In this document: positions 406-58,330 of the stretch, piece by piece
Numbering within the stretch: position 1 is the first letter of the stretch
Layout: each line of letters begins with the position of its first letter
Assembly (NCBI RefSeq): GCF_036321535.1
Contig: NC_087462.1
Span: 10,230,001-10,294,000, forward strand
DNA from: Camelus dromedarius
Lineage: Eukaryota
Reading direction: 5' to 3'
DNA: 64,000 bases
Position numbers and translations under genes: made by a program
Notes under the pieces: model-generated
The model's input: the letters and a program-made list of their open reading frames with translations, nothing else
Databases searched by the model: none
What the model was told of the DNA's origin: nothing

Positions 406-9595
<9,190 letters not shown>

Positions 9596-10544
9596 CCCCT
9601 CCTATGTGGCCTCTCCCTGGCCTGGAAGTCAAGCATTTTTGCAGAATGTTTTTTCCATAAATTGACACCTGGATAGAGACTGAGCCAACAGCCTATGACA
9701 CCTGGAAGATGAGAAGCCATGGAGGTTCTTACCAGGTGTAGACAGTGCCTCCCTCGTGTTCTGGAGTCGATCAGTCAGGGAGCCATAGGGGCAGGAGTGG
9801 GAGACTAGGGTGGCATTGTAAATAGCAGCAAATCCCTGCAACTAATTTATTACTTTTTATAAGCGATAGCCAGAGTGAGCTGCCACTGTTGAGGCGGCTG
9901 CCCAGGCCCTGCCCCATGTACCTGGGACCCATTTGCAGACCCTGCCCCCTGGGCTGAGAAGGAAGCACTTTGAAAAATCACGTGTGTTCATGTTTTCTGG
10001 TTTTTCTGTACTTTTAAAGTCTTTTTGTGTTACTTGATCCCATCCCTGACTCCAGACCCACTGATTCAAAGGGACACAGCCAAGCTTACCTGTCCAGGCC
10101 CAGTTTGGATTGGAGGGTCCATAAACAATACCCTCCACCACAAAACGAAGTAATCCTGATGATGGACTGCATTCTGAAGGCTACTTTCCACATCATAGCC
10201 TCTATGTAGGCCAGCCTTGCTAGTGTCTGCCTCCAGTCCTATAGGCTTGGGGTGTGTGGGAACTGGGGCTTTGATGTATGAATAGAAGTTCACCAGATCT
10301 AGACAGAGGGGTTGCCCTCTTCACAGGCAGACATTGATGCCCTGGAGGCAGAGGCCTCAAAGGTGCCGCCAGGGTAAATTGCCACCCTGGACAAGATTTT
10401 TTGTGTGTTTGATACACACCCGGGTGAGCCCTTACCCATGATGTGTCTAAAAATACCCCCTGGGGATTCCCTCCATGTGCCAGAGCCTTGCTAGGATGAA
10501 ATTCGAGTGAGAAAAATCCAACTAGGGGGCCAAGTTTGAACCTT

Positions 10545-11387: not shown

Positions 11388-12019
11388 TAAGCCATCTTTC
11401 TGACCTTTTAAATTTTTTTAAACATTAGAAAGTATTTTTAATTTTTTTACTTTATGTACTTCTTACACTGGTCTTTTCTTGGCCTGTGCCCTAAAATTCC
11501 CCCCACCCCCTTCCGAACCCAGCGTAGCCTGAGCGCATTCGGTTACTTCCTGAGTGCTCCAAAGGGTCGGAACCCTTTGGCCACACCCCCTGTTTCCGAG
11601 TGTCTTCGGTCATTTCCGGAAACAGTCGTCTGCATCTGGGCCCCCGCTATTACTCCCTGCCAGCCCGAGTTCAGCTGTTTCCGGATGCTCTGGGCTAGCA
11701 TAGAAACCCCGGCTTTCAACCCCGGCTCCTTCTCGGCCTTCAGTTTGTTTCCTGAAAAGCTCATCTGTCTGTGGCGAGCCCATTCCCCACAACTCCGCCG
11801 CCTTCAATTCCTTGAGTTCGGGGCCGCTCACCCGCCCTCTGGAGCCGTCCGTGCTTCGGCAGTTTCCGGAAGTTGGTGGTCACCTCTGGATCTAAGTTCC
11901 CAGGGTCTCATTTGGGACCAACCACACTTGGTTCTATCACAAAGTCTCAGGGCCCAGCCTCTGTTCTGCTAGTCCGGCTGGAACGCGCTCGGCCATTTCC
12001 GGAACCTCTCGGACGTCTC

Positions 12020-12069
12020 AGCCCAGCCGAGTCTAGCCGAGCCCAGCCGAGCCTAGCCGAGCCCAGCCT
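12020..12069. repeat. Pentamer/decamer tandem repeat in the PIK3R2 promoter
   Basis: agccc agccg agtct agccg agccc agccg agcct agccg agccc agcct; CpG at 12028, 12038, 12048, 12058. Confidence 0.9.
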
Positions 12070-12279
12070 CGAGATCACTCATATGACCCGATTGCGCTCG
12101 GTTGTTTCCGGAAATGATCGATTATCTCGGGGCACCGTCCCCCTTTACCCTCCAGTCCCGCGGGAGTATACTCGGCTCTTTCCGGAAACACTCGGTTGTC
12201 CCCAGGCTCCGCCTCGGCCTCGCTTCACCCGCTCGGCCCGAGTACGCTCGGCAGTTTCCGCCGGGGGCGGGCCCGACCG

Positions 12280-12390
12280 TTCGGAACCGCGGCAGCGGCG
12301 GCGGAGGCGGGGATCCCGCGGCTGCGGCGACGGCGTCCGTGGTATAGCCACGGGTCGGGCTCCGCTCTGCGTGACGGTGGCCTCGACCAG
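12280..12390 (+). other. PIK3R2: PIK3R2 non-coding exon 1 (start approximate)
   Basis: Consensus donor CAG|GTAAGT at 12390/12391 at the end of the GC-rich leader; next acceptor cccctag| at 14200/14201. Confidence 0.75.
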
Positions 12391-14220
12391 GTAAGTCCGG
12401 GCTGGTCCGCGTGGCAGGTGGGGCTGGGGGTGCACTCAAATGCGGGGCGCCCAGGCAAAGTGTGGGGCCACGGTGGAAGCCAGAATGCGAGCCGGGCTGC
12501 ATCGGGCCCCGCGGGAAAGGGGGCCGCAGGGAGCAGGAGGCCTCGGGCTCGACCTGGCTGCAGTGCAATCTGCCCCGGACGATGGTGGCGGAACGGGGAC
12601 CCTAGGCAGAAATAAGGGGTTGGAGCCGCGGCCCTGAATTGAGGGAGGCCCTGCCGGGAGTGGGGCATCGAGCAGTAATGAGGGGCGCCCAGGCATTGTG
12701 TGGGGCATAGTGGGGTGCAAGACAGCAAAGGGTCGACTCTACTTCCGTCCCCTTGGATGGGCTAGGGATTCACGCAGGCCCGAGTGCGCGTCTGCACACG
12801 CGTGAGCGCACAGGCCCTGCGTCCAGCCACTGAGCCCCCAGCCAGGCCTGGCCCTTCCACGCAGCCTCTTGGATTCGGGGAGCGCTGGCTCCCCGGCGCG
12901 CACACCGGGGCGTGTGCAGACGTGTGCACGCCGGGATGCGGAGGCGGGCAGGCAAGCGGATTCAGGCGGTTTCCTGGACGTCCCCTCACTGGGCCTCAGT
13001 TTCCCCATCTGCGGAGTAAGGGTATGGGGGCCAAGGAGCGGGTGAGTTGCAGCGCCCTGGAATGTGGAGCTTCTGCTCTGGTTTGGACACCTCTAGTGGC
13101 TTCCCGTGGTCGGAGATAAAGCCTGAGCCTCTGCCTGGCACTCGAGGCCCAGCATGGGCTTCGGCTTTCTTAAAGCTACCTGGAACTCTTGGCAAGCATT
13201 TCTTGCTGTCAAGCCTTTGCATGTACTATTTTTCCTCTGGCCAGTGCCCACTCCCGTCCCCTGTGAGGACCCGCCCTCTAGAAAAGCACCATCCCCCCAC
13301 CCCAAAACCTCTCAGAAGAACTGAACCTACAGGGCTAAGATTGGGAGTGTGTCTGTGCTGGGCTGTGTCTCCCTGAGACTGGGGACTTCTAGGGGGTGAT
13401 CATTGCTCTGAATCTGGCAGCCTCCCCCTTAGCAGCTGCAATGACCTCCTCCCATCTACCCTTTCCTGGCTCCATGTCTACCCTGGGGCTAAGGTCTTCT
13501 TGGCCTCCTACCAACCCCCTTCATTTTTGAGTACCTACTCTTGGCCCCAAGCTGAGCCCTGGACACCACTCGCTGCCACCTATTGCTCCATTCCCTCCTT
13601 CCCTGCAGAGATCAGAGATCCATTTATTTGGACTCACCTCTAGGCCTTTGCTTGTGCTGGGGCCTCTGCCTGGACCTCCTCTCCCACACTGTTTGGCCCC
13701 TGCTGCCTCCTTCTGTGCTCACCTGGCCTGATGTCTCTCCAGGGCTCCCACAGCACCCTGAGCATCCCCCATCACGCACTACCTGCTCTGGGTATGACTA
13801 TCTGGCCACATGCCTGCTGCCTCCTCTCATCCGCCCTGGGCTTTGTAAAGTTGGGCAGATCTGAGTTTTTGAGTCCTGGCTTCCTAACAAGGAAGTGGTC
13901 CAACAAAGACCTCCCTGCTCAGAGCCTTAGTTTCCCGCAGGGGCAATGAAGAGCTTGTTTCCTGAGCATGCAGTATGCCTGAAGTAGGTTCTTGGGAGCT
14001 CTGCTCCCAACAGCCTCAAAGGAGTGCTGTTATTGCACCCATTTTACAGCTGGGGAAACTGGGGCCCAGAGAGGGACAGGAACTGGCCCAAGTTTACCTA
14101 GTGAGTCCAGGGATTTGAACCTGGGATTTGGCCAGGTTCTCTCAGGTGGAGGTGACAGGAGTCCAAACTAGCTAATGCTGCCCTGCCCCTCTCCCCCTAG
14201 GTCAGCATCCCGAGCCGAGC

Positions 14221-14313
14221 ATGGTGACAGCCTGTGCCCCCGGCCCCCTCGCCTGGCGCAGCTGGAAGAGCCGCCAGCCTCGGGAGCCGATGGGCCCCCA
14301 CGTGAGGGAGTGA
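14221..14313 (+). other. Upstream ORF (30 aa) in PIK3R2 5'UTR, strong Kozak context
   Basis: agcATGG (A at -3, G at +4); MVTACAPGPLAWRSWKSRQPREPMGPHVRE-TGA, within exon 2 upstream of the main ATG. Confidence 0.5.
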
Positions 14314-14514
14314 GCAGTCTGGCCCAACCCTACAGATTGAGGGGGGACGCAGCGGCTGAGCGACCCGAGATCACGCTGCCGACCCCCTCCCACCAGTTGA
14401 ATGGTGGACCAAGCAACGAGTGACCCTTGTCAGGGTCACGGAGTAATGGTGGGAAGCAAGGTGTAAGCATCCCCTGTGGTCACCTGTAACTTCTTGGTGG
14501 AAATAGAGGTCTGA

Positions 14515-23763
<9,249 letters not shown>

Positions 23764-38660: not shown

Positions 38661-41928
<3,268 letters not shown>

Positions 41929-47949: not shown

Positions 47950-58330
<10,381 letters not shown>

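Follow-up and report, generated by a model that had tools for sequence, protein, structure and literature searches.

In the current study, the stretch of Camelus dromedarius DNA analyzed (64,000 nucleotides of contig NC_087462.1; hereafter the window, meaning the whole stretch) was found to carry, immediately before the inferred first exon of PIK3R2, an array of ten co-oriented units of the bipartite CpG motif YTCGG-N3-YTTCCGG(AA). The array recurs upstream of PIK3R2 in seven taxa and is very probably a functional, conserved cis-regulatory array. Judged from the form of the motif, the best-fitting candidate for its principal reader is DEAF1, to which we give a probability of about 0.5.

A scan of the 64-kb window with TCGGNNNTTTCCGGAA returned five matches, all on the + strand (U2, U5, U7, U8 and U9 in Table 1), and 100 dinucleotide-preserving shuffles gave a mean of 0.00 and a maximum of 0. 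The preliminary description of this DNA had listed these five 16-bp composites with identical spacing, together with a partial copy (TCGG cag TTTCCGccg, here U10) and two variants (U1 and U3), and all were recovered exactly where it had placed them. The five composites, TCGG-N3-TTTCCGGAA, differ in their spacers (TCA, CAG, CCA, TTG and CTC, no two alike), and TTTCCGGAA occurs in the window only inside them. In each copy the two CpGs are 8 nt apart, counted as in Jensik 2014. Two further, decayed copies (U4 and U6), absent from the earlier list, were recognized through cross-species alignment, and both halves are present in six of the ten window units.

Table 1. The PIK3R2 upstream array and neighboring features, in positions of the window.
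Feature	Positions	Strand	Description	Basis
Whole array	11539..12270	+	ten co-oriented units YTCGG-N3-YTTCCGG(AA), terminal GC box	motif scan, alignment
U1	11539..11554	+	variant, TCGG tta CTTCCTGAG; right-half CpG lost in window, CTTCCGG in three other taxa	alignment
U2	11606..11621	+	exact 16-mer, TCGG tca TTTCCGGAA	motif scan
U3	11671..11686	+	variant, TCAG ctg TTTCCGGAT	sequence, alignment
U4	11741..11756	+	decayed, CAGT ttg TTTCCTGAA	sequence, alignment
U5	11856..11871	+	exact 16-mer, TCGG cag TTTCCGGAA gt	motif scan
U6	11928..11943	+	decayed in window, TTGG ttc TATCACAAA	alignment
U7	11989..12004	+	exact 16-mer, TCGG cca TTTCCGGAA	motif scan
Simple repeat	12020..12068	+	(AGCCCAGCCGAGCCTAGCCG, period 10/20), CCGAG each 10 bp	Tandem Repeats Finder score 91
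U8	12098..12113	+	exact 16-mer, TCGG ttg TTTCCGGAA	motif scan
U9	12172..12187	+	exact 16-mer, TCGG ctc TTTCCGGAA, conserved TCCCGCGGGAG directly before	motif scan
U10	12248..12270	+	proximal partial unit, TCGG cag TTTCCGCCG, fused to GC box GGGGCGGG (12263-12270)	sequence, alignment
PIK3R2 exon 1 (inferred)	12283..12390	+	non-coding; donor after 12390 (cgaccag/gtaagt, cut before gtaagt)	L022/L023 contigs via alignment
PIK3R2 coding start	14620..14943	+	p85-beta SH3, in exon 2	SH3_1, 3o5z match
AATAAATAAATAA	11378..11390	+	likely poly(A) signal of the upstream MAST3-like kinase gene	AATAAA run in sequence

For the comparison among species, a search with the open reading frame (ORF) of the ATG exon yielded exon-sized ORFs from many mammals, whose contigs supplied the DNA upstream of PIK3R2. 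The comparison set consisted of the window and six further taxa (L001/L002, L008/L009, L014/L015, L024, L011 and L020), that is, eight loci from seven taxa; L007 and L028, with too little upstream DNA, were left out. L011 and L020 are presumably rodent-like, an assignment made as a lead only, from the likeness of their protein N-termini to that of mouse. At every locus of the six further taxa the array sits 2–3 kb before the ATG exon, and in a MAFFT alignment the ten units pair one to one, identified by unit-specific flanks such as the TCCCGCGGGAG that precedes U9 or the GC box that follows U10. Since the units align one to one across the taxa, the array is older than the split of these lineages, and the non-motif columns are 0.50–0.62 identical when the rodent-like loci or L001 are compared with the rest. 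In a 13.1-kb contig from a more distant vertebrate (L027, protein 63% identical), the 5.3 kb that precede the ATG exon showed no array, which is uninformative, as the promoter may lie further upstream.

Constraint was measured as the mean pairwise cross-taxon identity per alignment column, by column class. The identity was 0.79 for the TCGG columns, 0.64 for the spacer, 0.79 for TTT, 0.81 for CCGG and 0.71 for AA, against 0.515 for all remaining columns of the array; every motif class exceeded the background columns (Mann–Whitney p 1e-7 to 3e-3), and TCGG exceeded the adjacent spacer (p 0.009). Between pairs of taxa, the identity was 0.77–0.92 in motif columns and 0.50–0.79 elsewhere. Conservation jumps at the T of TCGG and fades about 16 nt past the start of TTTCC, often with a third TCGG there. 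No indel was found between the halves in the intact units of any taxon, whereas the flanks are rich in indels, and four to six units per locus have both halves. These data indicate that purifying selection acts on both halves and on the fixed distance between them, as the preliminary description had supposed for the motif. It had also named as refuting evidence a loss of TCGG conservation with GGAA kept; this outcome was not observed, with TCGG at 0.79 and AA at 0.71. Forward CCGGAA occurs 2 to 5 times per taxon and the full 16-mer 1 to 5 times, the window having the most; the commonest motif substitution is that of the first T to C (12 cases). As the forward GGAA is the least constant part and is never present in U3 and U10, the conserved core is TCGG-N3-YTTCCGG. 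The composite proposed earlier is thus upheld for this core and given up for the full 16-mer, the GGAA end of which varies from 2 to 5 copies per taxon.

The units differ in which part has been kept. TCGG is invariant at all eight loci in U5, U8 and U9; the array's best ETS-type site, CCGGAAGT, is found on the forward strand of U5, and in several taxa U8 ends in GGAC or GGCC at its 3' side. In U2, TTTCCGGAA is invariant at all eight loci and TCGG is kept at five (not in the rodent-like loci or L001). U3 reads YTTCCGGAC or YTTCCGGAT at each of the eight loci, with forward GGAA in none, and its TCGG is intact in both rodent-like loci. U6, decayed in the window, reads TCGG ttc TTTCCAGAA (or TTTCCAAAA) in two other taxa. 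U10 retains TCGG-N3-TTTCCG and the GC box at all eight loci, with a right half of TTTCCGCC or a close variant and no forward GGAA at any of them. U4 is missing from both rodent-like loci and lacks a CpG in five of the six loci that carry it, where it has the form TTTCCTGAAAAGCTCA at high identity (11741-11770, L008:3201, L014:837, L024:3183), while L001 retains GTTCCGGAA / GTTCCGGAAAAGCTTA; the CpG-less form may have acquired a different reader.

Between U7 and U8, the simple repeat at 12020-12068 is longer in the window than at the other seven loci in the alignment and, from this comparison, is read as a lineage-specific expansion of a half-site-like element. At the rodent-like loci, the same interval contains an insertion of about 45 bp (L011:455-520) to 85 bp (L020:540-640) with extra TTTCCG/CTTCCG, and several of their units are CTTCCGG, the optimal ETS flank, instead of TTTCCGG.

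Concerning the gene behind the array, protein matches identify it as PIK3R2, which encodes PI3-kinase p85-beta. The ORF at 14620-15024 opens with the p85-beta SH3 domain (Pfam SH3_1), the best PDB match of the ATG exon is 3o5z, 'PI3-kinase regulatory subunit beta' (E 6e-52, compared with 1e-33 for p85-alpha), and the C-terminal SH2 domain of p85-beta found its match in an exon at about 23.5 kb. Exons upstream, at 740-9600, encode a MAST3-like protein kinase. With these kinase exons and the AATAAA run on one side and the p85-beta exons on the other, the array falls in the interval between a MAST-type kinase gene's end and PIK3R2. In a related species, two spliced RNA contigs (L022 and L023), placed on that species' genomic locus L008, define an exon 1 from 3716 or 3737 to 3839 and an exon 2 from 5487, so that exon 1 begins 8–29 nt beyond the array's closing GC box (3716 corresponding to 8 nt). 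Because these contigs put exon 1 directly after the last copy, the array is assigned to the proximal promoter, at roughly -20 to -750 relative to the inferred exon 1 start, although it counts against this placement that the start is carried over from another species' contigs, the ends of which give a minimum estimate of the transcription start site (TSS) and not an exact one. The order of MAST kinase exon, array, exon 1 and p85-beta SH3 exon agrees with the earlier assignment of the array to the PIK3R2 promoter.

The PIK3R2 mRNA of the L008 species (L022:1-546) begins with a 5' untranslated region (5'UTR) some 546 nt long that contains upstream ATGs; exon 2 contributes about 425 nt of it. By analogy with L022, the exon-2 part of the 5'UTR in the window spans about 14195-14619, beginning about 425 nt before the ATG. 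Translational control of p85-beta through this long 5'UTR with its upstream ATGs may be worth study.

The array forms the 5' half of the PIK3R2 promoter CpG island. From 11535 to 12290, the G+C content is 0.61 and the CpG observed/expected ratio is 0.9, compared with a ratio of 0.09 in the kilobase before the array; this contrast suggests an island that is unmethylated in the germline. The values exceed those that define CpG-island core promoters (G+C >0.5-0.55, observed/expected >0.6), and the island lies beside the inferred TSS. The lost CpGs are mostly TpG/CpA. Distances from CpG to CpG within the array peak at exactly 10 bp (16 observed versus 4.5 expected, z 5.9), with a second peak at 20 bp (z 3.4), and 33 of the 58 array CpGs are in TCGG/CCGA/CCGG contexts, whereas in the adjoining part of the island the figure is 12 of 59.

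The preliminary description had taken the differing spacers as a sign of selection on a motif rather than tandem duplication, and on the latter point our data lead elsewhere. The units are spaced about 65–76 bp apart, and the larger gaps contain decayed units or the simple repeat. The ungapped flank identity among six window copies is 0.354 (35%), compared with 0.272 +/- 0.016 (27%) for random placements (z about 5), and the majority sequences of the ten units share a consensus of about 50 bp, ..CCGAG.GCGY TCGG CTA TTTCCGGAA.C..TCGG.TG.CTC.GG. Tandem Repeats Finder reported no long-period array of about 70 bp, only the 10/20-bp CCGAG repeat. Because of the regular spacing, the flank similarity and the extended unit consensus, the pattern indicates that the simplest history would be an old tandem amplification followed by near-complete divergence, save where selection held. 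On this model, a unit of about 70 bp would have been duplicated in tandem before the split of the rodent-like and the other placental lineages, giving about ten co-oriented copies, and would then have diverged almost wholly, the survivors being the two-part core YTCGG-N3-YTTCCGG(AA) and, in the flanks, weaker CCGAG and TCGG elements. Through these surviving elements, CpGs would come to lie a helical turn (10 bp) from one another, on one face of the DNA. In this respect, the array resembles homotypic repeat-derived promoter arrays, which have many co-oriented, regularly spaced copies before the TSS and likely arose by local duplication; unlike in those, the element here is a bipartite CpG motif, with orthology and selection tested across mammals.

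DEAF1 is a SAND-domain factor that oligomerizes. In the literature, it selects two CpG half-sites of the TTCGGG type, with CpG spacings of 6, 8 or 9 nt selected and spacings of 6–11 nt bound when tried by electrophoretic mobility shift assay (EMSA); the bases flanking the CpGs matter, AACGCC abolishing binding, and methylation of one half also abolishes it (PMC4274154). The DEAF1 consensus has been quoted as TTCGGGNNNTTTCCGG, and a site in RAI1 intron 2, TCGG cgg CTTCCGGAT, is reported to be bound by DEAF1 in EMSA and to activate a reporter (PMC4705554). In myocytes, chromatin immunoprecipitation (ChIP) sequencing of DEAF1 gave the motif CTTCCG in the mTOR promoter, the deletion of which abolishes activation by DEAF1 (PMC12685040). 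Each intact unit of the array likewise has two CpG halves, TCGG and CCGG, at a CpG spacing that is 8 nt throughout, in every unit and taxon. Of the halves, the first has Y at -2, being TTCGG or CTCGG, and the second is TTTCCGG, with TC before the CpG; this second half agrees with the consensus TTCGGGNNNTTTCCGG (PMC4705554) and the ChIP motif CTTCCG (PMC12685040), and not with the scanning pattern TTCGKNNNNNTTCGK (PMC4274154). The match to a DEAF1 consensus and the 8-nt CpG separation reported earlier agree with the published work (PMC4274154, PMC4705554).

The known DEAF1 elements, in the EIF4G3 promoter, in the promoter/5'UTR of DEAF1 itself (N52-69) and in RAI1 intron 2, share with the units the two CpG half-sites. 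A gap of 8 nt between the CpGs is also that of the EIF4G3 site and is among the three spacings that were selected in vitro (PMC4274154), and the RAI1 site, TCGG-cgg-CTTCCGGAT, has a layout identical to that of the PIK3R2 units (PMC4705554). A location in CpG-island promoters is a further likeness, and known targets have several half-sites. The array differs in having ten phased units over 730 bp where the known elements have one or a few sites, in a second half of TCCGG instead of TTCGG with a first half that is often CTCGG, and in a GGAA tail that no DEAF1 consensus asks for; binding here is predicted from sequence.

Several observations weigh against DEAF1 as the reader. None of the units matches the scanning pattern TTCGKNNNNNTTCGK, and the second half, TCCGG, departs from the preference for TT before the CpG in the 2014 selection (PMC4274154), while the first half is CTCGG in four of the seven window units that retain TCGG. 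The consensus is written with NNN in the published source (PMC4705554) and with NN in the preliminary description. Read on the minus strand, the right half becomes CCGGAA[A/G][T/C] and makes a respectable ETS site, in which the T/C change at the first T of the motif corresponds to an A/G that ETS sites tolerate. Moreover, the ChIP-derived CTTCCG is itself ETS-like, so that ChIP signals at promoters may be confounded. Nevertheless, a single oligomerizing protein would explain both halves, the 8-nt spacing and the CpG dependence, and plausibly the helical phasing too. In the proposed mechanism, DEAF1 would bind the unmethylated CpG half-sites (TTCGG/TTCCG type) and set PIK3R2 transcription, and CpG methylation would block its loading. 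As DEAF1 binds two CpG half-sites 6–11 nt apart, cooperative loading of several molecules on the phased array would be possible. The TTCCGG(AA) half would probably be shared with, or contested by, ETS factors of the GABP/ELK/ELF type.

Among CpG-island promoters that lack a TATA box, no element is commoner than the ETS site. It is possible, though in our view with odds well short of even, that the array is essentially an ETS array, in which GABP, ELK or ELF read TTCCGG(AA) on one or both strands, GABP binding paired sites as an alpha2-beta2 tetramer, with TCGG serving a separate partner or DNA shape and DEAF1 being minor. CCGGAA or TTCCGG cores are present in 5–7 units per taxon; the ETS cores noted earlier in the right half occur in the window as forward CCGGAA in five units and as TTCCGG, the minus-strand core, in six. 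The U5 forward strand is CCGGAAGT or CCGGAAGC at six of the eight loci, and the minus-strand reading of the right half, with the 12 cases of first T to C as the A/G tolerated after GGAA, fits as well. The array also resembles the ETS/GABP sites of TATA-less CpG-island promoters (CCGGAAGT) in its CCGGAA cores on one or both strands and its position a few hundred bp before the TSS, and its multiple copies suit the GABP tetramer. However, a monomer site leaves TCGG uncovered, although TCGG is as conserved as the core (0.79 versus 0.81), and the conserved unit reaches 7 nt past the ETS core to this TCGG at an invariant distance, which an ETS site leaves unexplained. Forward GGAA is the least conserved (0.71), being variably absent in U8 as well as lacking in U3 and U10 at every locus, so that some conserved units are wholly without it. 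The flank is mostly GGAAA (AAA/TTT), whereas the optimum is GGAAG (AGT/ACT), and the optimal CCGGAAGT is found in U5 only. A literature search found no paper tying GABPA to PIK3R2 mechanistically. If ETS factors were the sole readers, the array would be an unusually regular yet ordinary CpG-island promoter.

Some other single factor, for instance an uncharacterized zinc-finger or CpG reader, might recognize the 13–16 bp composite or phased YCGR, the likeness to DEAF1 and ETS sites being coincidental. The long conserved footprint, from TCGG to about +16 including the third TCGG, would suit such a factor, and no published DEAF1 or ETS matrix consulted includes the inverted CTCGG/CCGAG elements or the strict phasing of CpGs at 10 bp. 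Against this, no candidate could be named among the factors compared by eye (HSF, STAT, E2F, CENP-B box and ZNF143), and DEAF1 already covers both halves and the spacing; we consider another factor unlikely. That the array is a neutral tandem-repeat relic in a CpG island, with no sequence-specific function, is very improbable, since, although the units do stem from duplication and a lineage-specific simple repeat lies in their midst, motif columns are 0.77–0.92 identical between taxa whose neighboring columns are 0.50–0.62 identical, conservation drops sharply at the motif edges, the units persist one by one in all seven taxa, and a flank identity of 50–60% excludes very close relatives.

The comparison by eye gave the following results. 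For HSF, TTCnnGAA is present, but the third pentamer is absent and the T-C-G of TCGG is unexplained; STAT requires TTCN3GAA and E2F requires TTTSSCGC; the motif departs from the CENP-B box at the essential A and CGGG; and the ZNF143 SBS matches at about 10 of 18 positions.

A second TTCGG-rich cluster was observed in the window at 56349-56690, with TTCGG at 56349, 56380 and 56493 and then at 56523, 56533 and 56543, exactly 10 bp apart. TTCCGGAAtgTTCGGG lies at 56652, and a cAMP response element, TGACGTCA (56751-56758), and a GC box come after it, both within 56751-56773. The large ORFs near the cluster had no Pfam match. Since the minus strand carries a PDE4-type catalytic exon (HDVDHPG) near 51642, and a RAB3-type exon is found near 39832, the region may be an upstream PDE4C promoter region, and the cluster resembles a further phased half-site array in the DEAF1 style.

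Multi-site DEAF1 promoters and homotypic promoter clusters are already known kinds; the PIK3R2 array stands out by its size, regularity, phasing, depth of conservation and the pathway it touches. Our literature search found, for the PIK3R2 promoter, work on ARID4B, SNAI1, Sp factors and a long non-coding RNA, and no paper linking DEAF1 and PIK3R2 mechanistically, in agreement with the earlier remark, which knew of no description of this link. As a natural repeat-derived promoter in which a bipartite motif and its helical phasing alone survived divergence of roughly placental age, the array would lend itself to work on how phased CpG half-sites are loaded cooperatively and on competition between DEAF1 and ETS factors.

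Gain-of-function variants of PIK3R2 cause a brain-overgrowth syndrome. Variants of DEAF1 cause intellectual disability (PMC4274154), and recent work has put DEAF1 between FOXO, which lies upstream of it, and mTOR and Pik3c3, which lie downstream (PMC11587838, PMC12685040). The ten phased units might serve as a high-avidity platform for DEAF1 oligomers, placing PIK3R2 among the strongest mammalian DEAF1 targets and closing a feedback loop, a proposal that we regard as doubtful on the present sequence evidence. If it were true, p85-beta/PI3K would activate AKT, AKT would inhibit FOXO, FOXO would repress DEAF1, and DEAF1 would act on PIK3R2 beside its targets mTOR and Pik3c3, which would tie the DEAF1-associated neurodevelopmental disorder to the PI3K-AKT-mTOR brain-overgrowth pathway. 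A deeply conserved DEAF1-type composite array of ten units as the PIK3R2 promoter offers a concrete hypothesis for how the dose of p85-beta may be set.

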